From Macrostomum lignano (lineage: Eukaryota), in NCBI GenBank assembly GCA_002269645.1, contig NIVC01001957.1, forward strand, positions 62,001-126,000: DNA of 64,000 nt, given 5' to 3'. The translations under genes and the position numbers were made by a program. Below are positions 2,329 through 64,000 of the stretch, piece by piece; the stretch's first letter is position 1, and every line of letters begins with the position of its first letter. The notes beneath the pieces are model-generated. The model had not been told where the DNA came from, made no database searches, and saw nothing but the letters and a program-made list of their open reading frames with translations.

Positions 2329-4097
2329 ATGACCGAGTGGCAGGCGGAGTTGTCCAAGCTGGATCTCCCGCCCGGTCGGATGGCTTTTATCCTTGATGGC
2401 GTTGCTAGTGGCTTTCGCATCACCAATCGTCAGATGTGTGGCAACGAGCTGGTTGAGGTGGCAAACTACCCATCGGTTTTTAAGCACCAAGACAGGGTCG
2501 TGCGTCAGATTGCTAATGAGCTTCGTCTCGGTCGTTATCGTCTCTGTGCTGCTGGTGACAAACCCCGCATAGTCAGTGCCCTTGGTGCGCTGCCGAAGTC
2601 CAACGGTGGCGTTCGATTAATCCATAACTGCAGCCGGCCGCAAGGGAAGTCTGTCAATTTCGCTTACGAAATCGAGCAGAGACTGCGTTTCACCTGTGTC
2701 CAGAACTTCGCTAAGAGGCTTAAGAAGAATTACTTTATGTGCAAGGTCGATCTCAGCGAAGCCTATCGTTCATGTGGGATCCATCCTGACGACCAAAAGT
2801 TTACCGGTTTGAAGTTTCGGCTAGGTAGCGATGCTTGCGACACCTACATGGTGGACACGCGCCTGCCATTTGGTGCGGCTGCTTTCGTTACGGCTTTCTA
2901 TCATCTCAGCGAGGCGGTCAAGTTGATGATGGTGCACCGCGGCTTCGTCAATACTGAGGCCTATCTCGACGATTTTGCCTTTTGCGGTTCGCAAAACGAG
3001 TTCGAGGCCTTCTTTAATGTGTTGACGTCGCTGATGACCAGACTGGGCTTCACCGTGAATTGGACGAAGTGTAAGCGGCCTTCGCAAAGGATGACGTTTC
3101 TCGGTGTGGAGCTCGACACCGTCAAGGGCCTGAAGCGGCTTTCAGACGAAAAGGTGGAGAAAATTTTAGAGCAACTGGACGATGCTGCTGCCACGGATCG
3201 CATCAGCAAGCAAAGTTTACAGCAGATCATCGGCAGGCTGGTGTGGGCTTCGCAGGTGATCGAATGCGGTCGGCCTTTTCTTCAGGACCTGATTTCGCGC
3301 TCTAACAATTTGGCCGTCGGTCAGCAAGATGAGGTGGATGCGGCCCTGCGTAGTCAGCTGCGCTGGTGGAAGTGTGCTCTGCTAGCTCAAAGGTGGAAGA
3401 CACTCTGGTTCAATGGCGATTTCGATGCCGCGATCGAGTCGGACGCCTGCCTGGTGGGCGGCGCAGCCGTGCTGCGGTTGCCGGGGGCGTGAGTGACTGG
3501 CGCTACGTTAATTGGGACCTCGACGCGGATGCTGTCTTTCGGAATCTGCCTATCAATTACAAGGAGGCTGTGATGCCTCTGATGGCGTTGCTGTCGTGGC
3601 GGGACCTCCTGCACAACTGTCGGCTGTGCATCTACTGCGATAATATGGCAGCGTGCTGTATTATCAACAATGGGGTCTCCAAGTGCCCTCTGGTGATGAG
3701 GCTGTTGCAGACGGTGGCGCTGCTTTGCATTCGTCAGAACATTCAGCTGCGTACTTACCATGTGCCAGGGCCGTTTCAAATTTTTGCTGACGCCGCGTCT
3801 CAGCTGCACGAGGGCAGTCAGTTGTTGAATTTTTTGCTGCGCTATTATGGTTCATTGATGCGTCTCGCTAATTGCTCGCTTGCCTGGCACACGCTTTCTG
3901 CTGCCACATTCGCTTTTCTCTGTTTTCAGGTCGCCAGACTGCGCCAGACCACCTCAGCCACCGAGCCCGTGAGCTACTCGGTTCCTCCTACGCGGCCCGC
4001 TCGAAAAGCGCCATCAGTTCACACGTGCGGTCCTGGCGCGCGTACTGCTCAGCCAAGGGACTCGACCCCGCCGCGTGTACTGTGTCCGCGCTGCTAA
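2329..4097 (+). pseudogene. Reverse transcriptase + RNase H (DIRS1-type), one frameshift
   Basis: RT motifs KVDLSEAYR, RLPFG, YLDD, FLGVELDT. RNase H acidic residues SDAC / NYKE / CDN / ADAAS are split by a frameshift near the G-run at ~3482-3490. Confidence 0.88.
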
Positions 4098-4921: not shown

Positions 4922-5435
4922 CAGGTAAAAATAAGAGCAGAAGTTCGATTTTTTGCTTACTTCACTTAAAGGCTGCTACGAGCTACTTCAGTCTCTGCTA
5001 TCGCAAACTATTATTCTGAAAGCTCTGGAAAATCAAATGATTTTCCGAAAAACATGAATTGACTGTCTTCAAGCACAAGCCGTAATTAATAAAAATAATC
5101 TCAAAGATAAGACATTTTCTGTCATCATATAAAGGCCAATACTCTCTTTCTTTCTTTAGGTATGAAGAGTTTGAAAAGGTTCTCAAACTCTTCATACCTC
5201 TTGAGAGTGAGAAGACAAACTATGTCACTAGTGGACAACAGTTAGTGAACTCGAGAGGTTTGCACGGTGAACAGAACCCAGCGATTGGCGTGGAGAAACT
5301 CTGTCTGAGAACAATATACAGCAGAGACTAAATTTCTTGCTCACAAGGCGAACCAACATTAATGCCGAGCATAAGGTAGAAAAGCTGTATAAAAAGAGGT
5401 GTAGAAAAAGATTTTCAGTGAGCCGTAGAGCCCAA

Positions 5436-7088
5436 ATGAAGCTTATAAAGAGTGTGTCAGCTATATCTCGGTTCACTATGCTCAACAGTCTGCAGCGATG
5501 TGCAGCTTTACTGCTCCATCTAAGCCTTCGACATTGGAACTTACTTCTTCTGTTAATGATTTCCCTGACCCTGTCGGCGCAGCTGTCATTTGGAAGCAAA
5601 TTATTTCTTGGCCGGCCTAGAAAACAATTCAGCGCTCCAGTCATTGAGACAGAACCATCGTTAAACAAAGGTAAATCATTAAAGAGCATTTCAGCAGGAC
5701 CAAAGCCTGAACTCAGTGGTACCACTAACAAGCCACCGACAAGATTTGATAATTTAAAACCCAAGCCGCCACTAAAAACTACTGGCGAGATGGCAAAAGA
5801 TTTGTTTAAAGAAGCAAGCGCCGATTCCCAACACATAGGTTACTTTTTGGCTGATAGAAAACATTTCATCCTTGAAGATCCATTCGAAGGCCCAGTTGCC
5901 CATGTGAAGTCTCAAAAAGGAAGCAGTAACAATCACAAACAAGTAAAAAATCTCCAAAAAGGTTCATTCATTGATCAGAAAGATCACAAAGAAACTACAA
6001 TATACGAAGGCGTCAATCCAACAAAAGAAACAGAAGCTCAAAAACCGCAGCAAAACAAAACGATTGAGCCACAAACTCTCATGGAGCGAATCGAGCGAGC
6101 GAGCGACTCGCGCCTGTACTCCAAGCTGCTGACTAAACTCAAGTCGCTGGGTTCGGCGGTCACTCAGCAGCAGCTGCAGAGCGCAGCCGGCAAGTGTGGA
6201 GGCCTCCAGAGTCCGGCACTTCGTTACGTGCAAACCTACGACTTTGTGCACATGGCGGATCACCTGTGCACCGCGGGCGACCTGCTGGCGTTGGTGGCGG
6301 TTCACAGCAACGCGAAGAACCTCGGCCGTCGAGCGACCATCCGCAGAACGTGGGGATCGCTCAGGTACGTCGGACGGTACCGCATCGAGGTGGCCTTCTT
6401 TCTCGGCCGGCCAGCGTCGGGAGACTCGGACGAGTCCGGAGCGACCGGAGCACAGCTCGAGGCTCTGCTCGATGCGGAGAGCGACCGGTTCGGCGACATC
6501 GTGCAGCTGAACTACACCGAGAACTACAGGAACATGAGCATCAAGCACCTGGCTGTGTACGAGTGGGTCCTGCGACACTGCCAGTCGGCCAAGTATCTCG
6601 TCAAGGTCGACGACGACACGTTCACGGACGTTGCACACTTGGCGACCTTCCTGAGCCAGGGTGCTCCATCCGGTTTCTACTGCTCCGCCACCCGAGGCGC
6701 CAAGCCGCAGAGATCTCCGTGGCCTTACATGTCAAAATGGTTGGTAAGTTACGACGAGTTTCCCGGCAGTTTCTACCCAACCTACTGCGAGGGCTTCGGC
6801 TACATTCTCAACGCCAAGCACGTCGCCAGCATCTACCTGTGCTCTCTGTTCAAGCAGTTCTTCTGGATTGACGATGTTTACGTGGCCGGAGTTTTAGCAG
6901 CCTCGCTAGACATTCCAATCGTGGGGTTCTGGAGAGGCCACGGATATACAACAATAGTACCCAGCCTTGCTTCTGAGGGCATTGTCAATTACATTTTTCT
7001 GACAGCTTTCGACAGCGCATTTTTCGATTCTCTGTGGGTAAAACTTTGGCAGGCTGTGCTGAAGTACAGTCTGGACGTAAATTTGTAA
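5436..7088 (+). CDS. GT31 family beta-1,3-galactosyltransferase-like, intronless type II membrane protein
   Basis: N-terminal hydrophobic anchor and low-complexity stem, then the GT31 motifs RATIRRTWG, FGDIVQLNYTENYRNMSIK, KVDDDTF, YPTYCEG and WIDDVYVAG. First ATGs at 5436 and 5478. Confidence 0.93.
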   Translation: MKLIKSVSAISRFTMLNSLQRCAALLLHLSLRHWNLLLLLMISLTLSAQLSFGSKLFLGRPRKQFSAPVIETEPSLNKGKSLKSISAGPKPELSGTTNKPPTRFDNLKPKPPLKTTGEMAKDLFKEASADSQHIGYFLADRKHFILEDPFEGPVAHVKSQKGSSNNHKQVKNLQKGSFIDQKDHKETTIYEGVNPTKETEAQKPQQNKTIEPQTLMERIERASDSRLYSKLLTKLKSLGSAVTQQQLQSAAGKCGGLQSPALRYVQTYDFVHMADHLCTAGDLLALVAVHSNAKNLGRRATIRRTWGSLRYVGRYRIEVAFFLGRPASGDSDESGATGAQLEALLDAESDRFGDIVQLNYTENYRNMSIKHLAVYEWVLRHCQSAKYLVKVDDDTFTDVAHLATFLSQGAPSGFYCSATRGAKPQRSPWPYMSKWLVSYDEFPGSFYPTYCEGFGYILNAKHVASIYLCSLFKQFFWIDDVYVAGVLAASLDIPIVGFWRGHGYTTIVPSLASEGIVNYIFLTAFDSAFFDSLWVKLWQAVLKYSLDVNL

Positions 7089-11670: not shown

Positions 11671-12455
11671 TAGGCCGTCGCCACCGGGGGCACAGCGGAG
11701 ACACCCCCCCCCCCAGTAAAAGCTCTGGGGGGGACTGGCTGGGGGGGGGAGATGCCAATGCTTTGTCCTCTACCCCACCTTGTGAGTCGTGGTAATCAAT
11801 AATTTTTCTTCAGGACGCCAAAATATAGCGACTTCGGCGCTAAAATGAGTGCCTGCGGCGCTAAAATGAGTGCCTGCGATGCTAAAATGAGTGCCTGCGG
11901 CGCTAAAATGAGTGCCTGCGGTGCTAAAATGAGTGCCTGCGGTGCTAAAATGAGTGCCTGCGATGCCAAAATGAGTGCCTGTGGCGCCAAAAGGAGTGCC
12001 TGCGGCGCTAAAATGAGTGCCTGCGATGCCAAAAGGAGTGCCTGCGGTGCTAAAATGAGTGCCTGCGGTGCTAAAATGAGTGCCTGTGGCGCTAAAATGA
12101 GTGCCTGCGGCGCTAAAATGAGTGCCTGCGATGCCAAAATGAGTGCCTGCGGCGCCAAAAGGAGTGCCTGCGGTGCTAAAATGAGTGCCTGCGGTGCTAA
12201 AATAAGTGCCTGTGGCGCTAAAATGAGTGCCTGCGGCGCTAAAATGAGTGCCTGCGATGCCAAAATGAGTGCCTGCGGCGCCAAAAGGAGTGCCTGCGGC
12301 GCTAAAATGAGTGCCTGCGGCGCCAAAATGAGTGCCTGCGGCGCCAAAAGGAGTGCCTGCGGCGCCAAAATGAGTGTCAAAATTTAGTCTTGTACATGTA
12401 CATGTTGAATTCTTGGCTTTGTCCCCCCACCATAAAATCCATGGCGACGCCCCTG
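11671..12455. mobile_element. Non-autonomous hAT-like element carrying an internal minisatellite
   Basis: Imperfect TIRs TAGGCCGTCGCCA / TGGCGACGCCCCTG. Flanking 8-bp TSD GTGACTGG (11663-11670) / GTGACTAG (12456-12463), 7 of 8 matching. Confidence 0.65.
11835..12376. repeat. 21-bp minisatellite (GCTAAAATGAGTGCCTGCGGC), ~26 copies
   Basis: Directly visible; it yields the spurious MSACGAK and LILAPQA ORFs. Confidence 0.95.
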
Positions 12456-13730
12456 GTGACTAGTGTTCGTTTCAGATCGCATCACAGACAGATGAAACAG
12501 AAGTTTTTGAGGTTTAAAACTTTATATTTTTATTTACAAAGTTACCAGACAGTTGAAAGCCGACTGCTGATGTGGGAGCGACCATCGACCGAGCATTCTG
12601 ACCTCTGATGTACAGTGGAAGCTCTGTACTGTGTACGGCTCTTCCGTGTAGAACGCACGATATTAAAGTTAGCTACCAACAGGGTTTGAAATCACTCTAT
12701 ATATACTGTTAGGAGTCCTCATTTAATCTTAAATCACGAATTAGCTGATGTGTTGCTTAACAATAAATATTTTAGCAGTGACATTAAACTTACAATGTAT
12801 AACAAGTTGATAATTTAATTCTCAATCTCAAACTACTTAATTTATCCAGATTGGGAGTAATTATTGTCCACAGAGGACTAAGTACTCTTCGATTTCGGCT
12901 TGAAGCTTATAGTAGAAACAAAATAATGACTTCTTTGGTGCTTCGCATCATTACTTACCTGTTGTTGCTTTAAAATTCACTTTAGCCGTTGAACTTGAGA
13001 CCAATAACCAGTTCAGTCAAATCTTACTAATCAGTACGGTAACCATTGGTTCCTAGTTACAACTACTTTTGGGACACCCCTTGTGTATTAATAATTTTAA
13101 AGGAATCACGTTATAATTACCAAAAGTTAATACACTCAGCAACAGGTTGCCCACTGATTTCGTGATGGAAACTCTAACGTATGCTGCTCAGTGTACGGTT
13201 GTACGTTTGTTTTGGAACAGGCAAGCTTTCACAAGTATTCAAGGTGATCAAATCAGAGTTTATTATTTTCTATAGCAACAGCAGTTTTTTCGTCTTCTTT
13301 CTGAGTTTCTGTTCAAATTCGTAATTCATAATACAATGGGTAGGCTAATTGCTTGTTATAGCTGATTTACAAAAAAATATTAGACACCAAGTTGTAGGAT
13401 AGTTTTCGTTCCTAATTACACCGTTCGTTTGGTATGAGTCATGCATCCGTGTAGATCAAAATTGACCTGTACAGTGCAATGTGATACGTTTGTAGTTGGC
13501 TATAAAGTGTTGAGAATTCCTACAGGGGGTAGGATTTACGTCGAAAAGCTGTGCATTAATTATGAGTACGTGCTCATTCTTCTTGTTGGTGTGGTCCGAC
13601 CTATGCTATTAGAGAACGCTTTGAGGGTGTGTACAAATTCAGTACGCAGCTTTGCCGCTAGAACAGGCAGTAAAGGAACATATTAAGCCCACTATTGAAT
13701 GCAGAATGCTCTGAAAAAAGGCGCGAAAGT

Positions 13731-15194
13731 ATGAAGCACGACATTTTGCATTCGATGTCCATCTGCAAGGCCATACTAAAAGCCATTCAACAGAATCAAA
13801 TTAGCCATCTGAAAAACCTTCTGCCTATGTTAAGCCCTCGGCAGCTGCAGAAGTGTCGCAATGATTTCAATAATCGCACGCCGTTACACGAAGCAGCTCT
13901 ACTAGGCAACAGTGAAGCCGTCAAGGAGCTGCTTGAACTGTTTCAACGCGATGGAATCAACAGAGCCTTCGCGTTGAACGCCCGCGACAAGGACGGAGCC
14001 ACTCCACTGTACCTTGCAGCTCTGAGAGGCCAGCTAACTCCGGCCAAACTGTTGCTGAAGTCTGGCGCAATCGTGGACTTGTCAAATCGAGATGGTCGAA
14101 CTCCGCTACACGCAGCATGCGAGAAAAACAAAGCCGATCTGGTTAGTGAACTCTTGAAGTCCGGCGGAGCTACAGTCAGTGCGGTGGATGATCGACAGTC
14201 TACCCCGCTGCACGTCGCAGCCCACTGGGGCTTCCCGGAGCCAGTGCGCATCTTACTCAAAACAGAAGACATCGACGTCAACATTCGCAATCTACTAGGA
14301 TGGGTCAGTTTTGATTGAGTTTCCATAACTTGCAGGTACCTGATACCTTATCTTAAAGTATTTTAAACATTTCAGGCACCGATTCACGCCGCAGCCCGTC
14401 GCGGTCACGAGTCGGTGGTCTCGCAACTGGCCAAGAAGTCCATTTGCACCAATTTGGACCTGCAGGATACCAAGGGCTGGTCACCGTTGCATCACGCGGC
14501 AGACAGCGGTCATGGCAACGCTGCTAAGGCGCTGATAGAAGCTGGAGCCACTGTAAATCTTCGCGATAGCGTTCAGGGAGTTACGCCGCTTCATTACGCA
14601 TCGCACCGCGGCCATTTAGGTTTTGTACGCTTGCTACTTGAGCATGGCGCCTCCCAATCTATAATGTCCAACGACGGCTGGACGCCGCTTCACGTTGCCT
14701 GTCGGCTTCGCCGACTAGACGTTGTTAAAGTCCTATTGGCCCAGACTGACGCTCCGGTGCAGGCCAAAGCTCGCCGTGGCTGGACGCCGTTGCACGCCGC
14801 GGCTTGGACTGGAGACGCCGAAATCGTGCGTTGCCTGCTGAAAGCCGGAGCGATGGTCGCTCCACCTCTGGCAGACAGCTGGACGCCGCTTCACCTGGCG
14901 GCAATGTGCGGACGCGCGGAAGCGCTCGGTATACTGCTGTCGGAAGGGGCAGATCCTTTGCAAATAGAGCATCGTCATCAGCTGACGTCTCTAGACGTAG
15001 CTGTCCTGTTTCAGCACATGGATTGCGCGCAACGACTTGTTAAACATTGCTTCGACTTTCCCAGCAGCTACATGGCACCCTTATTGAAATGTTTTCAAGA
15101 AGCAGACGATTACCCGTCAAATAACGGCGACCCAATAGGCAGAATATCTCAACCAAAGCAACGCACATCCGATTCTGGCACCAAAGTCAAGTAA
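13731..15194 (+). CDS. Ankyrin-repeat protein (about 11-12 repeats); probably the 5' half of a longer ANK-Mab-21 gene
   Basis: Exons 13731-14303 and 14376-15190/15194 splice in frame. Repeated TPLH/SPLH...G motifs. The apparent stop TAA (15192-15194) lies inside a donor-like GTAAGA starting at 15191. Confidence 0.9.
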
Positions 15195-16591
15195 GAGCAA
15201 TGTTTAGAATTGTGTATAGTAGATGTGTGACGAATACCGAAATAACAAAGCCAAGGCAAAGGCAAGAATGATTTGGGAAGTTAACGCTAAATGTGACTAT
15301 GTGAACTTCCAGCGATCGTAGGGCGGTAGCACTTAAAGCCTAAACAACTCAGGTTAATGCAATTTGAGTTCTAATGAGAATTCAATAATTAGAAGTTGAT
15401 TCCAACTTCTAACGAGCTAATTCAATGTTTATAGCTCGTATAGTTGCAAAACTTAAATGGTAAAACAAATGTCAGCCAATTTCCTACGCTACTCTTACAA
15501 ACCTTTCTTAAGCAGCGTGAGAAGATGTTAATATTACACTTTAATAGATGTCCCGAATGATTACAGAAAGTGATTAACCCAAATGGAATAACGACCGAAG
15601 TGACACCGTCACACATGTACATATCTTGATACAAGATTTCAACGCTCGTATCTTATCAAATGCGTTGACGCACTTAATTGTTTATGTGTATTTACAACTT
15701 CTTTTCTATCTAGCCACGCTGGGATAAACTACAGGAATCACTTCAATAATAAATTTTATTCTGCATCCAAAATTCTACTTTACAAAGCGGTCTTCACCTT
15801 CACAAAGCTCTGGTCGAGTCTGGATTCGTTCATGGTCGAGCCTCGCTACAAGCTGCCGTGGCCGATCACTTGCAAGGACTCATAAGTAACTACTAAGGTA
15901 TTCAAATAATGAATTGTCGAAGCGGTTGCATCTGTGCGGCAGCTTTGCTGAAGGCTGGGGCAGCTCAGTTTGTCGTCTTGGTGGTCGAGTGGACGAAGAC
16001 TCGGATATCGACATATCTGAATACGTGGACGATCGGTTGTATAATTTATCGGGAAAGTGCCAATGCAACAGTGATGTCGGTGTGAAGAGAATTAACAAAT
16101 TAGCTGCTGAAACTAGCGACGAAAGGGCTGATGAGTTGGCGGCGAACACTGAAAATGAGAATAAGACCATTCTTACGTACGAAAAGGGGCACGTTTGGTT
16201 TTCTGGCTACGGTGAGTTGCTCTATAATTTTCTGAACTAAAGTTCAGCTTGTACTTTTGAATGCTTAAACCAACATTAACAGCAAGTATATACATTATTA
16301 AAAACCTTAGAATAAATGTCAATTATCATTGCAGCGGCTCATCCGGCACGCACCCAATACGGCTGTCTGGGGCGTCCCGCCATGGACATGGCTCTGATGT
16401 ACAGCTGTTGCGCCTATCCCAAAGTAGACATTTTTGAATCGCCAGGCTACCTATCTCCCCAGCTGCTTAAACAACTCAGAGAAGCGACAGAGCTGTCCAA
16501 CGCTTGTCCACTTGTTGGCGCATCCCTACCGGATATGGAAGGCTAGCAGTTGCGGATCAGCACTAAATGGTTGGAACTGTTGTTAGTACGC

Positions 16592-19007
16592 CCCGCAATC
16601 TTATGCGGGCCTCTATCCAGCTGGGATACGTTCCCAAAAGCTGGACTGAAGCTCGAGTAGTCTTTATTCCCAAACCTGGGAAGGGTGACTACCAAAGCGT
16701 CAAGGCCTTCCGGCCAATTAGCTTAACGTCAGCAATGCTTAAGCTCACTGAGAGGCTTATTCTCTGGCGGCTGCTCTCCTGCGAGCTGACAGCGATGCCC
16801 CTCAGCAATAATCAGCACGCCTTCCGTACCGGGAGGTCGACTGACAGCGCCCTGCATGCGATTGTCGAAAAGATTGAACGGGCGGTACTGGGTGACGGTT
16901 ACGCCCTGGCTCTCTTTCTTGACATTGTTGGCGCCTTCGACAACGTTATCTTTGAAGCGTTTCAGAGGGCCCTTCAAAATCGCAAAGCTCATGCTACCCT
17001 CATACGGTGGATCATGTACATGATCTCCAACCGTACGGTCACTGCCCAACTTCTTGGGCAAACTGCCTCCACCAGAGTCTGTAAGGGTGGACCCCAAGGC
17101 GGAGTCCTCACCCCGACGCTCTGGAACCTGGTCATGGACGCTCTTCTGAGTGACTCCCGACCTGACCCCGTCTTCAAAGTCGGGTATGCTGATGACGTCA
17201 CGGCCATTGTGGCAGGACCGTCTCCCAGCACGCTCAGGGATCTGATGCAGAGCTTTATCCGCAAAGCAGAATCCTGGGCCAATGACAATGGTTTGGAACT
17301 CTCTGAGCCCAAAACCGTTGCCATTATGTTTACCAGCAGACTACGCTGGAACATACGTCCTCTGCAGCTCTACGGCAGAGATATTGCCTTCGCGCACCAG
17401 ACCAGATGTCTCGGGGTCACACTTGACCACCGGCTCAACTGGTCCTTCCACGTGAAAGCAAAAGCTAAGCGTGCCTCAGCCATCCTGGCCCAGCTCCGAC
17501 GAGCACTTGGCACTTCTTGGGGTCTATCCCCAAAGCGGCTTTGGTGGATCTATACTTCCGTAGTTAGACCTGCCATTACGTACGCCTCTGTTGTCTGGGT
17601 TAGCGCTACCCAGGTCAAAAGCCATGCAGACCTGCTCAACACGATCCAAGGCAGAGCGTGTAGGCTCATCTGCAACGCCACCAGGTCCACGCCCTTTGCT
17701 GGCATGGGGGCCTTTCTTAATCTTCCGCCTCTTGACCTCTTCATCAGGGGTGAGGCGGCTAGAACGACGCGGCGTCTAATTGATGCCGGCGTCAAATTCA
17801 TTTACATGAGAGCACCTGCTAAGCGGAACCTTGTCCCGCATAGCGATCTGTGCCTCAACTTTCTCAACGAGTGTCAGGCCAATCGCGTCTTCACCGATGG
17901 CATTGCCTCAACGCTCAACCTGAGACAGCGCTACTCCGTAGCTATCGACTCGCGCGATAACATCAATGACCATTGGAACCCTGGTGAGCTTCATTGCTAC
18001 ACCGACGGTTCTAAGCAGTCAGCCAACACCGGCTTTGGTGTTGGAATCTTTCTGAACGGGAGGGTCATCGCTACCCACGCTCAATACACTGGGGTCAACT
18101 CCAGTGTTTTCCAAAATGAAGTTCTGGCCATCAGCTCCTGCACTGCAGAGCTTCTCGCCACTGGCGTTACTGGTAAGAACATCATTTTCCATTCGGACAG
18201 CCAAGCTGCCTTGCACGCCATCAGTGGCTGCAGCACCAACTCTGCTACAGTCCTTGACTGTATCAAACTCCTCAATGTGTTGGGTTCCGCCAACAAAATT
18301 ACCCTTAAGTGGGTTCCGGGGCATGTGGGGATCCGAGGAAATGAGTTGGCTGACACCCTTGCAAAAGTTGGTGCCTCCGGCTCCTCTCTCGGCCCCGAAC
18401 CTCTTGTCCCGATTCCTGGCTGTGTCATCGACTCGCGCATCAAAGCGTGGATCAGGACTCAGCACCGCTCGACTTGGGCGAACCGCACGAACTGCAGGCA
18501 ATCCAGAGGCGCTGTCCCTCAGCCCTCTCACCAGCTCCGGAAGCTCCTCTTGCGCCTCTCGCGCAGAGACATCCGGGCTGCCACCATGACCCTCTCTGGT
18601 CACGGCTGCTTCTCCAGGCACCAGTACCTGCAGGGCAACGCCACCAACGCCACCTGTAGTTTCTGCAACTCAGGTGACGAAACCGCTGAGCATTTCGTCA
18701 GCATCTGTCCCGCCTTCACGCGGGCCAGACTCACTTACCTCGGGCCACACACATCTATTACTGAAGCGTGCAAACCCGAAAACTTTAATCAGCTCATGCG
18801 CTACCTTCGGGCCACCCGCAGGGCTGAACTCTCCTTTCCAGAGAGCACCATAGCTGCTGGCGACACTGGGGGACCTCCCTGGGCGGCGCCAACCCTCCGT
18901 CCATAGCGACGCGTCGGCCGTTCAGGGACTAGCGGAATGGGCGCCCGCGCCTTCCCGCTGTGTCCCCTCCGGGACAGCCCTGCAGCTAAGTCAAAGTAAG
19001 TCAAGAA
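16592..19007 (+). mobile_element. 5'-truncated non-LTR retrotransposon (LOA/R1-type, RT + RNase H + Zn knuckle), young
   Basis: Uninterrupted ORF to 18906 with LDIVGAFD, PQGGVLTP, YADD, YTDGSK, SDSQAAL, WVPGHVGIRGNELAD and CSFC...EHFVSIC. Perfect 13-bp TSD GTTGTTAGTACGC at 16579-16591 and 19008-19020. AAGTC-like tail. Confidence 0.95.
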
Positions 19008-20107
19008 GTTGTTAGTACGCAGCTTTACCGATGTACAGGTAAAAAATTAGAGTACATGTTCTGTCTAACAGTGCATTCTTCTAGAGTTATATTCTCTAAA
19101 TTCCTGAAAATAGGCAGTTAATCTCTGTTTTTTTATGCAGGGTCAACTGTACACAATTCTGAAGTACCTATTCAAACGGGTCATCAACAAACGTGGTGGA
19201 CAATTAAAATCATTCCACGCCAAGACTCTCGCATTTCGCATGTTGCGGGAGACATCGCCGGACCAATGGCGACCGGAACGACTTCCGGAACTGACGGCTG
19301 AGGCGTTGGACAAGCTAGCTGAGGACCTGCGACGTACTGGTCCTGGAATCGGCATGCACAGTTTCTTCTTCAACGATTCGCCACTGTACCTGAAGCGGTC
19401 GAACAATTTACCGAGCAGCGCAGATGACAAGCGACCTACTCTGAGAGCGGTTTTAGATGTCAGGAATAGCCTTGACCAAGTTCTCACTGAGTTTTTAGGT
19501 CACTTGCAGCCGCTGAGGCCCAACGCGGCACTAGATTATCATCCGTTTATGCTGCTACCTCGCAGTAAGCAGATTAAACAGATTCTCTGCTCTAAGGACT
19601 CCGCCCGACAGAAGCCGCCACAATCTAAGCCTACCGCCCAGCCGAAGTACCACGAGCTGCACGAGCGTGTTCTTCGTGCTCGCCGCGTGCGGCCTCGCCG
19701 CCCTGGCCTATATGCGATTCAATCAGCCAGGCGAGGCGCTGCAGCAACTGTCTCAGTTGCTTCTATCTGGTCATCGGCCGCTGCGTGGCATTCCTCTGCA
19801 CTACAGCAGCTTTAGCATGCACAGCGAATCGTCTGTGCAGCACTGTCTGCTAAAAAATGACTCGGCGTGGCGGTTCTGCTTTGTCCAGGTGATTAATTTC
19901 AAGCAAAATTTTAGTTGTCATTCAGTGTACCAATTATTGTTGAGAGCTTAAGTAGTCACGAATTAATCTTGAAATAGGTTTTTACATGTACGTTTAAGAG
20001 GGAAAGCTACATACTTTCAACATGCTTTATTGACATGTCATTATTGAGATTAGGCCATAAAATGTTCAAGGCTATTTTTCGAGCTAGAGCAAATGTTTCA
20101 TCTTACA

Positions 20108-20560
20108 TAGCTGCAGGGGCTACGCTCGTATGAGCAGCGGGGTGGTTGACGCCTATTCCGCCAACCCCTGCATGGTGACAACTTGAAGCTGGTGCTGTGG
20201 TGTCGCGCGGGGAGATCCGGTAGTGCCTGTGTCCGCAGTGCGTCTCAAGGACTTTAGTCGTCCTTGGTGCGTCTACCACCGAAATACCCTTACGTAGCGG
20301 ACGAGTTGGCAGAAATTCTTTGATCTGAACGCGTCGGAGAGATCCGGTTTTGGGCCGAGGTAATGGAAGGGCATTCACAGAAGAATTGGGCTCGACATTC
20401 GCAACACCGGAGAGGTGAAAAGGGCATTCCTCATTACTCACTAAGGATTTTCCCTGGAGGTAGCGATGTCTAGCGAAGCAGCAATGGCCTGGTGACCGCC
20501 ATGGTGACCGCCCTGCTGTCCCAGCGGTTCAGTCCAAGCAGGGCCTTACAGAGTGGTTCG
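20108..20560 (-). mobile_element. Degenerate 3' fragment of a related LINE (intronic)
   Basis: The minus strand matches the 22.4-23.0 kb copy (GAGGAATGCCC...CTCTCCGGTGT; TTACCTCGGCCCAAAACC..CTCTCCGACG), i.e. the Zn-knuckle/LGP region. Confidence 0.65.
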
Positions 20561-21076
20561 CTGTAGTACAGTGAGTTGATGTACTATTTAGTGTTGATGC
20601 TCAACACCATCAAAACCAATATTTCATCACAGGAAGCACCGCACGCCCTGCCGTTCCGATTTGACTTTTTGCCAACTGGCGTCATCCAGTTTCCGAGGCG
20701 TCTGCTCCGGTACGACGACTTCTACGCTGCAAACTTCGACGCTCTAGCCAAGAGTCTCTATCTTCAGCTGCTGAGCGACTGTGGTCTGTCCGAAGTGCCG
20801 GACGAAAATCAAGAGAAACGCATTCGCGGCTGGTTCACGGACATGCTGGACGCTGAGATGGACGCTAGCGAGATTGACTTGTTAATTGAGCATTGCAAGG
20901 CGCGAGAGGATCGTGAAGATCTGCTTGTCCGATTGGTTATCGAGCACAAGGATACTCTGGTGCAGTCTAGAACTGTGCACTGCAAACTGGCTGGCGTGAT
21001 AAGTACATCGGTAAGAAACCTAACGATGCATACTGTTTTTCTCAATTACATGTAGTTTCACGTGTCACATATCACC

Positions 21077-21627
21077 GCCTCTGGTGCTGGCGCCTCTGGT
21101 GCTGGCGCCTCTAATGCTGGCGCCTCTGGTGCTGGCGCCTCTGGTGCTGGCGCCTCTGGTGCTGGCGCCTCTGGTGCTGGCGCCTCTGGTGCTGGCGCCT
21201 CTGGTGCTGGCGCCTCTGGTGCTGGCGCCTCTGGTGCTGGCGCCTCTGGTGCTGGCGCCTCTGGTGCTGGCGCCTCTGGTGCTGGCGCCTCTGGTGCTGG
21301 CGCCTCTGGTGCTGGCGCCTCTGGTGCTGGCGCCTCTGGTGCTGGCGCCTCTGGTGCTGGCGCCTCTGGTGCTGGCGCCTCTGGTGCTGGCGCCTCTGGT
21401 GCTGGCGCCTCTGGTGCTGGCGCCTCTGGTGCTGGCGCCTCTGGTGCTGGCGCCTCTGGTGCTGGCGCCTCTGGTGCTGGCGCCTCTGGTGCTGGCGCCT
21501 CTGGTGCTGGCGCCTCTGGTGCTAAAGCCTCTGGTGCTAAAGCCTCTGGTGCTGGCGCCTCTGGTGCTGGCGCCTCTGGTGCTGGCGCCTCTGGTGCTGG
21601 CGCCTCTGGTGCTGGCGCCTCTGGTGC
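21077..21627. repeat. 15-bp minisatellite GCCTCTGGTGCTGGC, ~36 copies, in the last intron of the cGLR model
   Basis: Directly visible, between the donor at 21011 and the acceptor at 21658. Confidence 0.97.
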
Positions 21628-22359
21628 AATGCATTTTAGTTACATGTACATTGTACAGGGATCAGCGTTGGCGTAATATACATGTACGTAAAAGCAAGTA
21701 AAAAAATTTTCTCGCATCCATGCAGTCAAGTCTGAAGCGCAAACTTAAGTGCAAATTTCTGGAACAATTCAACCTGCAAGACGAATAAATCCTTCCGCGC
21801 TGATGCATGCACCTTGGAGATAAACTGAAATTTCTTAATTTCTATATGTACTGTATGCTTACATTTTAAGTGATGTCTATGTATTTAAGTGCGCGCTTTA
21901 AAGTACGTTCACATTTACATGTAGATATACTAGTATTAGTAAAACTATTCTGGTCGCTTATGATGGTTCCTGTGCGTACTGAATACTGTACAAGTTCCAT
22001 ATTCTTTTTATTCTCTATTTACATTCGTAAAATGTATCTGATGACGTCACGATCTGATTGTAAAGGGTAAACTCTTGTGTAATTCGTTGTTTTTTCTAAT
22101 TATTTTCAGTGTTAAAAGTCTCAATTAGTATTATTATTATACTTTTATACTGCATAAAATATATATATTCAACCAGCCCTAACCGCTGTACAAATCGTTA
22201 AGTGCGAATTGGTGTTTATCTTACGTTTATGTACATGTATGCACGTGCGTGTATTGAAATGAAAACAAAGTCCTAGGCGTCCAAAAGAAAGGATTTAAAT
22301 ACTACTCATGTACATTCTTTAAACGTAAGTTAAGTTCTCTACACTTCAAGTCACGTATA

Positions 22360-35800: not shown

Positions 35801-38800
35801 TATTCCTCAGGTGGGATCAGAATCCCATCATGTTCACCAGTTGGGATCAGAATCCCCTGTTATTCCTCAGGTGGGATCAGAATCCCATCATGTTCACCAG
35901 TTGGGGTCAGAATCGACAGTCCGAATGAAATTGCCCACTCCAGATACGAACAAGCCCGCCTAGCCATGGAAAACCGATCTGAACGAGTTCAACAGGTTCA
36001 ACAACTGCTAGACAATGGCCTGGAACTGTTGTGCGTCACCGGCGTTGAAGACCGTCTGCAGACGGGCGTCCGGCCTACATTGGAGACGTTGCGCAACGCC
36101 GGGGTTCGAGTCTGGATGCTCACCGGCGACAAGCTCGAGACGGCTTGCTGCATCGCTAAGAGCTCTCGACTGGTTGATAAATCATCCGGTCTGTACGTGT
36201 TTGAACCAGCGTCGGGTCGCAGCGCTGATTTGGATAAAGAGATTCGTATTATGGCTAGACGGGTTGAGGCTGGACAGGGCGTTGTCATTACTGGCCAGTA
36301 TCTGCAGGTGAGACGGGGGGTTAATGCATGAATTTTAAGAAACAGCACCTGTTCGTGAAATTTGAACAATATTAGACTTGTCAGGCTCTACAAAAAGGCT
36401 TCCTTGGGGATAATTATGAGGCTTCCACATAGGCTAATATCAAAGCTTCCGCATGGCGCCAATATCAATCAAAGCTTCCGCATGGCGCCAATATCAATCA
36501 AAGCTTCCGCATGGCGCCAATATCAATCGAAGCTTCCGCATGGCGCCAATATCAATCAAAGCTTCCGCATAGCGCCAATATTAAAGCTTCCGCATAGCGC
36601 CAATATCAAAGCTTCCACATGGCGCCAATATCAAAGCTTCCGCATAGCGCCAATATCAAAGCTTCCGCATAGCGCCAATATCAAAGCTTCCGCATAGCGC
36701 CAATATCAAAGCTTCCGCATAGCGCCAATATCAAAGCTTCCGCATAGCGCCAATATCAAAGCTTCCGCATAGCGCCAATATCAATCAAAGCTTCCGCATA
36801 GCGCCAATATCAATCAAAGCTTCCGCATAGCGCCAATATCAATCAAAGCTTCCGCATAGCGCCAATATCAATCAAAGCTTCCGCATAGCACCAATATCAA
36901 AGCTTCCGCATGGCGCCAATATCAATCAAAGCTTCCGCATAGCGCCAATATCAATCAAAGCTTCCGCATAGCGCCAATATCAATCAAAGCTTCCGCATAG
37001 CGCCAATATCAATCAAAGCTTCCGCATAGCGCCAATATCAATCAAAGCTTCCGCATAGCGCCAATATCAATCAAAGCTTCCGCATAGCGCCAATATCTAT
37101 CAAAGCTTCTGCATGGCGCCAATATCAATCAAAGCTTCTGCATGGCGTCAATATCAAAGCTTCCACATAGGCCAATATCAAAGCTTCCGCATGCCGCCAA
37201 TATCAAAGCTTCCGCATGGCGCCAATATCAATCAAAGCTTCCGCATGGCGCCAATATCAATCAAAGCTTCCGCATGGCGTCAATATCAAAGCTTCCGCAT
37301 AGCGCCAATATCAATCAAAGCTTCCGCATGGCGCCAATATCAATCAAAGCTTCCGCATGGCGCCAATATCAATCAAAGCTTCCGCATGGCGCCAATATCA
37401 ATCAAAGCTTCCGCATAGCGCCAATATCAAAGCTTCCACATAGGCCAATATCAAAGCTTCCGCATGGCGCCAATATCAATCAAAGCTTCCGCATGGCGCC
37501 AATATCAATCAAAGCTTCCGCATAGCGCCAATATCAAAGCTTCCACATAGGCCAATATCAAAGCTTCCGCATGGCGCCAATATCAATCAAAGCTTCCGCA
37601 TAGCACCAATATCAAAGCTTCCGCATGGCGCCAATATCAATCAAAGCTTCCGCATAGCACCAATATCAAAGCTTCCGCATGGCGCCAATATCAAAGCTTC
37701 CGCATAGCGCCAATATCAAAGCTTCCGCATGGCGCCAATATCAATCAAAGCTTCCGCATAGCACCAATATCAAAGCTTCCGCATGGCGCCAATATCAATC
37801 AAAGCTTCCGCATAGCACCAATATCAAAGCTTCCGCATGGCGCCAATATCAAAGCTTCCGCATAGCGCCAATATCAAAGCTTCCGCACGCCTCTGACGCC
37901 TCCAGGCAGCCGTAGAGCAAGACGAGCGCCGGTTCATCCAGCTGGCCTGCCAAGCTCCCGCCGTTGTGGTCTGCCGCTGCTCTCCAACGCAAAAAGCCGA
38001 AGTCGTCCGCCTATTGAAAGAGCACACAGGGAAACGGTGCGCCGCTGTTGGCGACGGAGGCAACGATGTCGCCATGATTCAGGCTGCCGACTGCGGACTG
38101 GGCATTGTTGGCAAGGAGGGCAAGCAGGCGTCTCTGGCTGCCGACTTTAGCATTATGAGATTTCAACACGTGGCTAGATTGCTGCTTGTGAGTTGCTGTG
38201 CCTTTTGGGGTCTCTGTTTACCTAGTCTACCTCTCCCTCCCTGTCTACCTCTCCCTCCCTGTCTACCTCTCCCTCCCTGTCTACCTCTCCCTCCCTGTCT
38301 ACCTCTCCCTCCCTGTCTACCTCTCCCTCCCTGTCTACCTCTCCCTCCCTGTCTACCTCTCCTTCCCTGTCTACCTCTCCCTCCCTGTCTACCTCTCCCT
38401 CCCTGTCTACCTCTCCCTCCCTGTCTACCTCTCCCTCCCTGTCTACCTCTCCCTCCCTGTCTACCTCTCCCTCCCTATCTACCTCTCCCTCCCTGTCTAC
38501 CTCTCCCTCCCTGTCTACCTCTCCCTCCCCGTCTACCTCTCCTCTTCCTGTGTACCTCTCCGTTCCCAATCTACCTCTTCTTTTTCTGCCTACCTCAAGT
38601 CTCCCTGTCTACCTCCCCTCTCCCTGTCTACCTCCCCTCTCCCTGTCTACCTCTCCTCTCCCTGTCTACCTCCCCTCTCCCTGTCTACCTCCCCTCTCCC
38701 TGTCTACCTCTCCTCTCCCTGTCTACGTATCCTCTTCCTGTCTACCTCTCCCTCCCTGTCTACCTCTCCCTCCCTGTCTACCTCTCCCTCTCTTTCTACC

Positions 38801-40972
38801 TCTCCCTCCCTGTCTACCTCTCCCTCCCTGTCTACCTCTCCCTCCCTGTCTACCTCTCCCTCCCTGTCTACCTCTCCCTCTCTTTCTACCTCTCCCTCCC
38901 TGTCTACCTCTCCCTCCCTGTCTACCTCTCCCTCCCTGTCTACCTCTCCCTCTCTTTCTACCTCTCCCTCCCTGTCTACCTCTCCCTCCCTGTCTACCTC
39001 TCCCTCCCTGTCTACCTCTCCCTCCCTGTCTACCTCTCCTCTCCCTGTCTACGTATCCTCTCCCTGTCTACCTCTCCTCTCCCTGTCTACGTATCCTCTC
39101 CCTGTCTACCTCTCCCTCTCTTTCTACCTCTCCCTCCCTGTCTACTTCTCCCTCCCTGTCTACCTCTCCCTCTCTTTCTACCTCTCCCTCCCTGTCTACC
39201 TCTCCCTCCCTGTCTACCTCTCCTCTCCCTTTCTACGTATCCTCTCCCTGTCTACCTCTCCTCTCCCTCTCTCCATATCCTTCTCTCCCTGGCTACCTCT
39301 CCTATTTTTGTCTACCATTTTTATCCCTTTCAACGTCTGAATCCTCAATATTGCTTTAACCCCTGTCAGGTGCACGGCCGTCAGTGCTACAAAAACACGG
39401 CCATATTGGCTCAGTTCATTGTTCACCGCGGCCTAATTATCTCCACAATGCAAGCCGTGTTCTCTGCCGTATTCTTCTACGTGGCGATCAGCCTGTTTCC
39501 CGGAATATTGATGATCGGCTACGCCACGGTGTTCACCATGTTCCCAGTGTTCTCCCTGGTGCTGGACAAGGATGTGGCCGATTCTACTGCCGAAAAATTT
39601 CCCGAATTATATCGGGATCTGTTGAAGGGACGAGAATTGTCCGCTAAAGTGTTCTTTATATGGACCGCTATATCGCTTTATCAGGTGACTATGATTATGA
39701 TTTTTTGTGTTTAAGGTGTCTCAATGAGCAAAAATACCCTTGTAGATGTCTCAATCATCAAAAATACCCCTGTTGATGTCTCAATGACCAAAATACCCTT
39801 GTAGATGCCTCAATGACCAAAAATACCCCTATTGATGTCTCAATGACCAAAATACCATTGTTGATGTCTCAATGACCAAAAATACCCTTGTTGATGTCTC
39901 AATGACCAAAACTACCCCTGTAGATGCCTCAATGAATAAAAATACCCCTGTAGGTGTCTCAATGACCAGAAATACCCCTGTAGTTGTCTCACTGACCAGA
40001 AATACCCTTGTTGATGTCTCAATGACCAAAACTACCCCTTTAGGTGTCTCACTGACCAGAAATACCCCTGTAGGTGTCTCAATGACCAAAAGTACCCCTT
40101 TAGGTGTCTCACTGACCAGAAATACCCCTGTAGGTGTCTCAATGACCAAAAGTACCCCTTTAGGTGTCTCACTGACCAGAAATACCCCTGTAGGTGTCTC
40201 AATGACCAAAAGTACCCCTTTAGGTGTCTCACTGACCAGAAATACCCCTGTAGGTGTCTCAATGACCAGAAATACCCCTTTAGGTGTCTCAATGACCAGG
40301 AATACCCCTGTAGGTGCCTCAATGACCAGAAATACCCTGTAGGTGTCTCACTGACCAGAAATACCCTGTAGGTGTCTCAATGACCAGAAATACCCCTATA
40401 GGTGTCTCACTGACCAGAAATACCCTGTAGGTGTCTCAATGACCAGAAATACCCCTGTGGGTGTCTCACTGACCAGAAATACCCCTGTAGGTGTCTAAAT
40501 GAGCAGAAATACCCCTATAGGTGTCTCAATGACCAGAAATACCCCTGTGTCTCAATGACGCAAGATACGTAATCCTATACGGTAGGCTTTGTCTAAATTG
40601 AATCATTCAAAGCGAGGTCTAAATTGAAAATTTTAGGGCGGCATCATAATGTACGGCTCCCTGTGGCTATTTGAAGGCTCATTCTTGCACGTGGTCAGCA
40701 TCGCATTCACAGCCGTAGTGCTAACGGAGCTGATCATGGTGGCTCTCACCATTCGCACCTGGTGCTGGCAGATGGTATTAGCAGAATTTTTAAGCCTTAC
40801 CTGCTACGTAACGGCAATGTTCGTACTGACCGAATACTTTGGTAAGCTGTATTTATCATGCTATTCATTTTCTTTACTGTCTACTTTTGTTGGACAATTT
40901 TCAGTAGTCTGTTTGGTATTTTGTCTTTTAAATTCTTAAAATTTTTAAAGTTCGATTCAATAGTTTGGGGCT

Positions 40973-62396: not shown

Positions 62397-64000
62397 ATGC
62401 TTTATCCAATGGCACACAATTTCCAACTTGGCTCTGAAAGTTCAGAAGCTGACCAAATCCGACTAGCAGCTGTGGGACTATCTAACTTCCTCGCAGCTCC
62501 ATCACCTTTGATTCAATGTGAAGAATTGTCCAGTGTGATTGGTCAAACAGTGCTGCTCAAGCTTGAACACACTTTACCTAGTGGATCATTCAAGATTCGT
62601 GGTGCATTTAATAAGATCAGCAGTGTGTTGAAGACTGCTGACCAGGATCAGGTAAAACTTAAAACATTTTTCTAATAACTTTAGCATTGAAAATTAAATT
62701 ACATGGACTATCTACCATGCTTCAAAATTCTGCAGATCTCAATTGAGCTAGGCCACTTCTTATGCAAATTGCATCACTAGTATACAAACTTTTTAGTTCA
62801 TATATAGCCCACTATAGCACAGTTTATACTATAAACAAGTATGTTTTTGTCTATTAAAGCTATTAAAAAAGACTTCCTTTTCATCGTAAATGGCCCAACA
62901 ATGGGGTTTGTACCCTGTGGAACAGTAGTGCAAAGCACCCTTAAGATGGATTTTACCACTGACAAAACGTAATGGAAACATCTGGCTAGAGTACACAGCC
63001 AAGAGATAAGAATTCGGCCCATCATTACTAGATTTGCACATTAGTTCTGTATGTGTATGTTTTGATCTCTACAAAATGAAATAATAACAAGCGTCACGTG
63101 GGCATTCTAATTTCTGTGAGCAGAAACCGCAGTTTGTTACCAGTAGCGCTGGCAACCACGTGCTCGCCTGCTGTCACGTGTGGCAGCAGCTGGGGGTGTC
63201 GGGCAGCGCGGTTTTCGTCCCCACCACGGTGGCCCCGGCCAAGGAGGCAAAACTCGCTCGGCTGCACGAGGCTGGCCTCATTCGGCTCAGCAAAGTCGGC
63301 CGCGAGTGCCTGGAAACCGAGCTGGCAGGTCGCGAGTTCGCTCTCCGCTGTCCCGGCTCAGTGTACGTGCCGCCCTACTCGGACTGGGAGGTCATCCGAG
63401 GTCAGGGCTCGGCCGCGTTCGAGCTGCTCCCAGACCCGACTGGGACCGGCTGGGCCGGGCAGCTGTCCGCCAACTCCGATTGGCTGGCGGCTGGTCACGT
63501 GACTCTGCTTGTGCCGACGGGTGGCGGCGGCCTATTGGCTGGCGTGGCTCTGTGCGCCAAGCTGGGCCGGAGCGGCCTGCGGACGACTGTGATTGGCTGC
63601 CAGCCCGAGGCGGACCAGGTGCTGGCCAAGTCTGTGCAGGTAGGCCTTATCTTAATTTGCTTATCAATAATTAGCAGGATTCAAATAGTAAAGGTTGTCT
63701 CAGTTCCAAACAAGTTTCTATTGGCTGAGAGCGAGTCACGTGATACAGAATTGTAGCAGATGGCACCGTGATTGTAAAACACACCATAAAGAATTCTCAG
63801 TGAGATAATTACCTGATAATTACATTTATTATCGAGGCCGGTCGACTTCTAAGCTACGACGAGGCCGGTTCGCGCGAGACGGTTGCGCAGGGTACGGCTG
63901 GCGCTGTAGAAGACGGCTCGCCGACCTTTGAAGTTTGCCGCCAGCACGTGGACCGCTGGTGCTCGGTGACGGAGCAGGAGATCGCCTGGGCCTGCCTTCG
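62397..64000 (+). CDS. PLP-dependent serine/threonine dehydratase / serine racemase-like (fold type II), partial
   Basis: Exons 62397-62651, 63124-63639 and ~63837 to beyond 64000. Motifs LKLEHTLPSGSFKIRGA (PLP lysine), SSAGNH, GQGSAAFE, VPTGGGGLLAG, GCQPE, TVAQG, VTEQEI. Confidence 0.9.

Follow-up and report, generated by a model that had tools for sequence, protein, structure and literature searches.

A probable recently pseudogenised member of a lineage-specific ankyrin-cGAS-like gene family in the flatworm Macrostomum lignano

Results

The DNA considered here is a stretch of 64,000 nucleotides from Macrostomum lignano (GenBank assembly GCA_002269645.1, contig NIVC01001957.1, positions 62,001 to 126,000), referred to below as the window, and the element of interest is a seven-exon gene on its + strand (13731-21788) in which an array of ankyrin (ANK) repeats is joined to a nucleotidyltransferase (NTase) core of the Mab-21/cGAS-like type, and which carries four disabling lesions. 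Protein searches assign the DNA to M. lignano, the conceptual protein without its ankyrin part being 96% identical to UniProt A0A1I8GZY0 (P0001, "Mab-21 domain-containing protein"); M. lignano is a free-living flatworm, and several of its proteins in which ankyrin repeats accompany this core show 28-30% identity to the same portion. All introns are of the GT..AG type, every boundary having been checked by script, and the ancestral protein had ~1,121 residues rather than the ~1080 given in a preliminary description of the locus.

The ankyrin part occupies the first two exons. Exon 1 (13731-14303) opens with an ATG at 13731, is defined by its open reading frame (ORF) and a GT donor, and encodes the first repeats; after a 72-nt intron, exon 2 (14376-15190) supplies the remaining repeats and a linker. 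Together they encode about 10 ankyrin repeats (Pfam Ank in 10 stretches, E = 6e-76; Ank_2, E = 1.2e-76), the tandem arrangement of 33-residue units by which ankyrin-repeat proteins are recognized. Exon 2 ends in phase 2 at AA/GTAAGA (the slash marks the splice site), such that its stop codon overlaps the donor, and hence retention of intron 2 (15191-15787, 597 nt), which lies between the ankyrin and NTase parts, leads to an immediate TAA. Splicing from 15190 to the phase-matched acceptor at 15788 joins the repeats to the NTase.

Exons 3-5 encode the NTase core and its helical lobe. Exon 3 (15788-16211, acceptor ...ACAAAG/C), at which A0A1I8GZY0 begins, encodes the N-terminal spine helix and the G-S and D-I-D motifs (GSFAEGWG...DSDID). 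Exon 4 (16335-19038), now split by a long interspersed nuclear element (LINE), encodes the third catalytic Asp (PAMDMA) and the first part of the helical lobe. The Mab-21_C helical lobe itself (YTILKYLFK...SFHAKT), together with the beginning of a ~280-residue tail, lies in exon 5 (19141-19888), where Mab-21_C is matched. The tail continues through exon 6 (20633-21010) and ends in exon 7 (21726-21788), which encodes SSLKRKLKCKFLEQFNLQDE and then stops at a TAA (21786-88) that overlaps AATAAA.

The 3' end differs from the one first proposed, in which the later exons ran in phase to a TAA at 21676: most of what was described is found at the coordinates given, but not the last exon. The UniProt model A0A1I8JGB2 (P0291) is the exact translation of window 20609-21010 plus 21726-21785, and it skips a minisatellite at 21076-21627 (15-nt unit, 36.8 copies by the Tandem Repeats Finder program) that is therefore intronic and non-coding, within intron 6. 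The counterpart model from a second copy of the gene (P0290) is spliced in the same way. We also considered a reading in which the minisatellite encodes a (GAGAS)n repeat and rejected it, because the gene models of both copies skip it, the paralogues have no such segment, and the number of perfect units differs between the two copies (33 vs 38).

This second copy (L003) is located on GenBank NIVC01000405.1 in the same assembly and is annotated as PAA83814.1 (BOX15_Mlig026362g1), through which we reached the locus, as this protein shares a 90%-identity cluster with A0A1I8GZY0. It is collinear with window 12861-21874 at 96.4% identity, introns and flanks included. PAA83814.1 uses the same ankyrin-NTase junction (...GTKVNGLRLHKAL... 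/ ...SGTKVNGLRLHKALVDSGF...), and the splice-site sequences, including the exon 2 donor, are identical in the two copies. Because the annotation of this assembly was built from RNA-seq data and transcriptome assemblies (PMC5730564), RNA evidence backs the junction in the sister copy. In a distant paralogue (P0002, L001 locus) the corresponding site is likewise occupied by an intron in phase 2, and other paralogues bear ankyrin repeats as well. The fusion of ankyrin repeats to the NTase is thus real, and both the donor and acceptor and the fused architecture of the preliminary description hold.

The lesions were called by aligning the window copy with the sister copy. The first is an 8-nt insertion (TACTAAGG, 15891-15898) that is absent from L003 and shifts the frame, the first in-frame stop being a TAA at 15894-15896 (codon 499). 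At 16544-16546 the AAG (Lys) codon of the sister copy is replaced by TAG. The third lesion is a 2,416-bp LINE with reverse transcriptase (RT) and RNase H domains (16592-19007; Pfam RVT_1, E = 4.5e-28; RNase_H, E = 6e-11), which is 5'-truncated, since it begins inside the RT domain; it is flanked by a perfect 13-bp target-site duplication (GTTGTTAGTACGC, at 16579-16591 and 19008-19020), and L003 has the empty site. At the fourth (19671-19691), 21 nt of filler stand where L003 has 116 nt, a net loss of 95 nt that shifts the frame and deletes ~38 conserved codons (..RHFLREL...LPDYARTTRE..). The lost segment ..LPDYARTTREC.. aligns with LPDCARTTRECL in the paralogue P0003 (LPDCARTTREC), and since it is conserved among distant paralogues that are only ~30% identical, the window state at this site is the derived one. 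All four lesions are absent from L003, and measured against this close homologue the window copy is a pseudogene; the two frameshifts, the TAG and the LINE that the preliminary description had named are matched exactly by the alignment of the two copies.

The same picture was obtained independently when a hidden Markov model (HMM) of the family was mapped onto the three forward frames, which revealed the same frame jumps. Profile positions 5-116 fall on exon 3 in two frames, positions 197-357 and 402-474 fall on exon 5 in different frames, and positions 466-563 fall on exon 6, with positions 358-401 missing. Frame-rescuing micro-introns at 15886-15941 and 19565-19666 were considered and discarded, being too short or in the wrong phase; the alignment with the sister copy shows plain indels there.

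The LINE retains an uninterrupted ORF of 779 codons. An ATG in the host exon (16567) opens this frame, which is chimeric and passes from host sequence into RT and RNase H (window 16567-18906), the LINE ORF and the host exon having the same orientation. Its 3' end is a short AAGTCAA-like repeat rather than poly(A), and no further copies of the element were found in the window or in the fetched loci.

The sister copy is damaged in the other half of the gene. Within L003 837-2295, which corresponds to window 13731-15190, one nucleotide is missing from a C-run at two places (opposite window 14203 and 14234), and in ankyrin exon 2 a CAG has become TAG (NLRDSV-stop-GV); the frame of the NTase and tail is open in this copy. 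PAA83814.1, as modelled in GenBank, begins at an internal Met downstream of these ankyrin lesions.

The cGAS-like nature of the core is supported by profile comparisons and a predicted structure. Pfam by itself is weak, and family membership was shown with these two approaches instead: the HMMER search proposed in the preliminary description succeeded for the ankyrin part, but Mab-21_C reached only 20-21 bits in the window gene and in A0A1I8GZY0 (cut-off 24.1; 24.8-24.9 bits in two paralogues), and PF03281 gave no match in the repaired window protein. A profile of six family members matches only cGAS and cGLR1 chains in the PDB. The joint profile of the M. lignano family and the Mab-21/TPR group described below aligns with cGAS over the whole catalytic domain (E = 2.4e-26, residues 24-332 of the crystallised mouse domain), with GS placed on GS, D70/D72 on the E/D pair and D156 ("DMA") on the third catalytic Asp, in agreement with the GS...DxD...D signature that had been read from the window; the scores are weaker for Mab21L1 (3e-15), MB21D2 (5e-15) and MiD51 (0.6). 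The fold was assessed with an AlphaFold2 model of A0A1I8GZY0, whose core is 96% identical to that of the window (predicted local distance difference test score 75, predicted template-modelling score 0.78). In a Foldseek search of the PDB with this model, the best 50 matches were all cGAS or Sp-cGLR1, with E values down to 4.8e-9 and template-modelling scores of ~0.5. The active-site G-S/D/D/D residues are kept in 56 of the 70 family representatives that cover the five columns.

The cGAS-like receptors (cGLRs) were defined by Li et al. (2023; PMC9980059) by a motif, h[QT]GS-X8-20-[DE]h[DE]h-X50-90-h[DE]h, together with two-lobe homology and predicted structure. The window gene and A0A1I8GZY0 read LCGS-X20-DIDI-X81-MDM, which in the window copy is split by a frameshift and a stop; this reading agrees with the motif at the G-S, at all three acids and in both spacings, but has Cys at the [QT] position. 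Homology also extends across the NTase core and the C-terminal helix bundle, as judged by the alignments.

The tail was first described as TPR-like, a reading for which we find no support: there was no TPR or other Pfam match in eight tails (that of the window gene and seven paralogues), and a tail profile gave no sequence match in the PDB. Its model, of modest confidence, predicts helices and a small beta element, and we regard the ~280-residue region as a family-specific and probably mostly helical domain. Foldseek with a full-length model was swamped by ankyrin matches and says nothing on the tail. The C-terminus of the paralogue P0004 (PAA, BOX15_Mlig015951g2) has a hydrophobic stretch, ILRILALHFLIVVVLIVIVIFVSYLPAV, that could be a tail anchor or intron read-through.

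An exhaustive HMM search over 1.84 billion representatives recovered 84 clusters (50% identity) at E<=1e-30 and 1,235 at E<=1e-3. All 15 strong matches whose source was looked up are from M. lignano, most with ankyrin repeats upstream of the core, and the paralogues with fused ankyrin and Mab-21 domains, for which a search had been suggested, number dozens in this species. One subfamily has GSFAEGWG and canonical ankyrin repeats, and in another, with GSYAEGWANSLVQVNGRTAADSDIDW, long Cys-rich helical repeats precede two to three ankyrin repeats. In three models, P0156 (PAA59752.1), P0310 (PAA80948.1) and P0185 (PAA93319.1), the cGAS-like domain and ankyrin repeats occur with a C-terminal caspase (Peptidase_C14, E ~1e-25), and the NTase domains of P0156 and P0185 have lost catalytic acids (GSDNS, GSDNT). 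These models could be real fusions of a pseudo-enzyme to a protease, or they could be merged gene models. Neither the window nor the fetched loci yielded a second family member. The weaker HMM matches are ~700-residue proteins that have C-terminal TPRs and in which both Pfam Mab-21 domains exceed the threshold; one comes from the clam Mercenaria.

The remainder of the window holds neighbours unrelated to immunity, namely a LINE RT fragment (2329-3492), a galactosyltransferase ORF (5337-7088), a P4-ATPase (flippase) exon (37966-39714) situated where the GC skew is strongly negative (30-40 kb), and a fragment of a pyridoxal phosphate-dependent enzyme (63160-63756). A near-perfect minisatellite (11835-12376, 21 nt x 25.8 copies) flanks the gene, and both this array and the one in intron 6, which is near-perfect too, create long spurious ORFs on both strands. 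Intron 5 (19889-20632) contains a GC-rich block (~20100-20560) and a minus-strand ORF of 112 codons, and differs from that of the sister copy by indels of 59, 48 and 12 nt.

Discussion

We propose that the window gene is very probably a recently pseudogenised member of a large, lineage-specific M. lignano family of ankyrin-cGAS-like proteins. The comparisons above establish the architecture, the cGAS fold, the aligned active-site residues and four independent derived lesions, and the window copy is unable to make a functional transferase. Synonymous divergence (dS) between the window and sister copies is 0.05-0.08, and this low value, the open LINE frame and the perfect target-site duplications indicate that the disabling was recent. 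The ratios of nonsynonymous to synonymous divergence (dN/dS), 0.20 for the ankyrin part and 0.15 for the NTase and tail, with an intron divergence of 5.1%, suggest that the gene was under selection before it decayed.

By analogy with characterized cGLRs, the intact ancestor may have been an enzyme that synthesized a nucleotide second messenger under ligand control, its ankyrin array serving as the module for sensing or regulation; the preliminary description envisaged an immune receptor that produces cyclic dinucleotides, which is something we infer from the same analogy. If the window copy is spliced like its sister, its mRNA would have a premature stop 35 codons past the ankyrin-NTase junction and upstream of four exon junctions, which would make it a likely target of nonsense-mediated decay and would yield at best an ankyrin-only protein of 498 residues.

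Several observations weigh against this interpretation. Transcription and splicing of the window copy are assumed from the sister copy, which is itself damaged in its ankyrin part, and we saw no fully intact orthologous copy. At the [QT] position of the cGLR motif the window gene has Cys, and most paralogues have Val or Phe there (family counts V 37, F 12, T 11, C 3); the spacing of 20 residues from G-S to D-x-D is at the upper limit of the published motif. In addition, since the main text of PMC9980059 makes no mention of M. lignano, none of its proteins is among the 15 active cGLRs described there.

The most substantial of the other explanations we considered is that the family has a Mab-21 fold but that its NTase is a scaffold or pseudo-enzyme, as in Mab21L1, MiD51 and shrimp Mab21, in which case the name cGLR would be a misnomer. 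No product is known for any family member, the [QT]GS position is non-canonical as noted above, some caspase-bearing members have lost catalytic acids, and a 2026 report (PMC12928593) describes crustacean Mab21 proteins that act outside nucleic-acid sensing. However, 80% of the representatives keep all five active-site residues across paralogues of only 25-35% identity, which is hard to explain without catalysis, and in the profile scores Mab21L1 and MB21D2 trail the cGAS and cGLR structures by about 10 orders of magnitude, and MiD51 by far more, so that we consider a non-catalytic family unlikely, while giving it real weight.

Two further explanations concern the window copy itself. Its ankyrin frame is intact over 463 codons with a dN/dS of 0.20 against the sister, L003 has the opposite pattern of damaged ankyrin exons and an open NTase and tail, and retention of intron 2 would give a clean ankyrin-only ORF, all of which would fit a subfunctionalisation by complementary degeneration in which the window copy is alive as a retained ankyrin-only gene of 463-498 residues and the sister keeps the NTase half. 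We think this improbable, as the lesions are young, and the low dN/dS is mainly a record of the period that preceded them and says nothing on current constraint; moreover, a spliced window mRNA would have its premature stop ahead of four exon junctions, and the two 1-nt deletions of L003, being in C-runs, could stem from errors in long-read assembly. No near-identical ankyrin-only protein or model is on record among 5.8 billion proteins, although this search, which returned only generic ankyrin proteins at 27-43% identity, is uninformative. Assembly errors might also be invoked for the window lesions, or a collapse of haplotypes, the real gene being intact, given that the assemblies of M. lignano are built from long reads and contain much repetition and redundancy (PMC5730564) and that the sister copy does show homopolymer indels. 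Yet an 8-nt insertion, an A to T change, a 2.4-kb LINE with perfect 13-bp duplications and the replacement of 116 nt by 21 nt are none of them homopolymer errors, and A0A1I8JGB2, from an independent assembly, matches exons 6-7 exactly and ends short of the upstream exons, as would fit a broken frame, although its shortness is uninformative alone because that assembly divides the intact L003 copy among separate models too. An artefact is thus very hard to credit, and a recently disabled ankyrin-cGAS-like gene is the explanation we retain.

The architecture has already been catalogued. Li et al. (2023) list ANK- and TPR-fused cGLRs, and the available portion of their Table S3 includes five M. 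lignano proteins (entries 89-93: PAA86972.1, PAA45980.1, PAA57558.1, PAA93208.1 and PAA68676.1) that clearly belong to the same family and were part of a 140-protein screen, with Ank_2 domains given for M. lignano entries in the available portion of Table S2; PAA83814.1 does not appear in those portions of the tables. The five proteins have N-terminal Ank_2 and share with the window gene the GS[FY]A[ED]GW...SD[IV]D core, the QGQ[LF]..[IL]K helix and motifs in the tail, and the window gene is a different, decayed paralogue that is ~30-35% identical to them. Hence it is not a new kind of receptor, and what the locus adds is a decayed paralogue with a documented mechanism of loss.

Vertebrate cGAS and coral Sp-cGLR1 (PDB 8gjy) have the bilobed NTase/helical-bundle fold in common with the window family, and the G-S, the [DE]x[DE] and the third Asp align, at ~13-18% identity. 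The window family differs from them in an extra loop of ~8 residues between G-S and D-x-D, an insert after the first strand, and the added ankyrin and tail domains. The nearest relatives that we found outside Macrostomum are the invertebrate proteins with Mab-21 and TPR domains (~700 residues, for example XP_045156543.2 of Mercenaria mercenaria; E 1e-14 to 1e-20), which share GS.xEG...SD.D, the third Asp and Mab-21_C, but which have no ankyrin array and have real C-terminal TPR matches in Pfam where the Macrostomum tail has none. Mab21L1, MB21D2 and MiD51 have the same superfamily fold and, as seen in the joint-profile scores, are much weaker matches than cGAS.

Flatworms are reported to have mostly lost cGLRs, and nothing relevant on STING in Macrostomum was found in the literature. 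It is possible, although we put it forward tentatively, that the M. lignano family is a lineage-specific repertoire of innate-immune receptors with a new output module and, in some members, direct coupling to a protease, if the caspase-bearing gene models are real. Were this the case, the turnover by gene birth and death at this locus would be a signature of such a receptor repertoire.

The object of interest is therefore the family, with its dozens of divergent ankyrin-cGLR paralogues, rather than the dead copy. The locus itself is a clean example of gene birth and death within a family of cGAS-like receptors that has expanded in a regenerating model flatworm, with a dated LINE insertion and a sister copy decaying in the complementary half. 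As M. lignano can be made transgenic and intact paralogues such as PAA65033.1 (903 residues) are available, the family is an accessible system in which to learn what ankyrin-fused cGLRs sense and what the unclassified tail domain does, and it could show whether cGLR signalling exists in flatworms.

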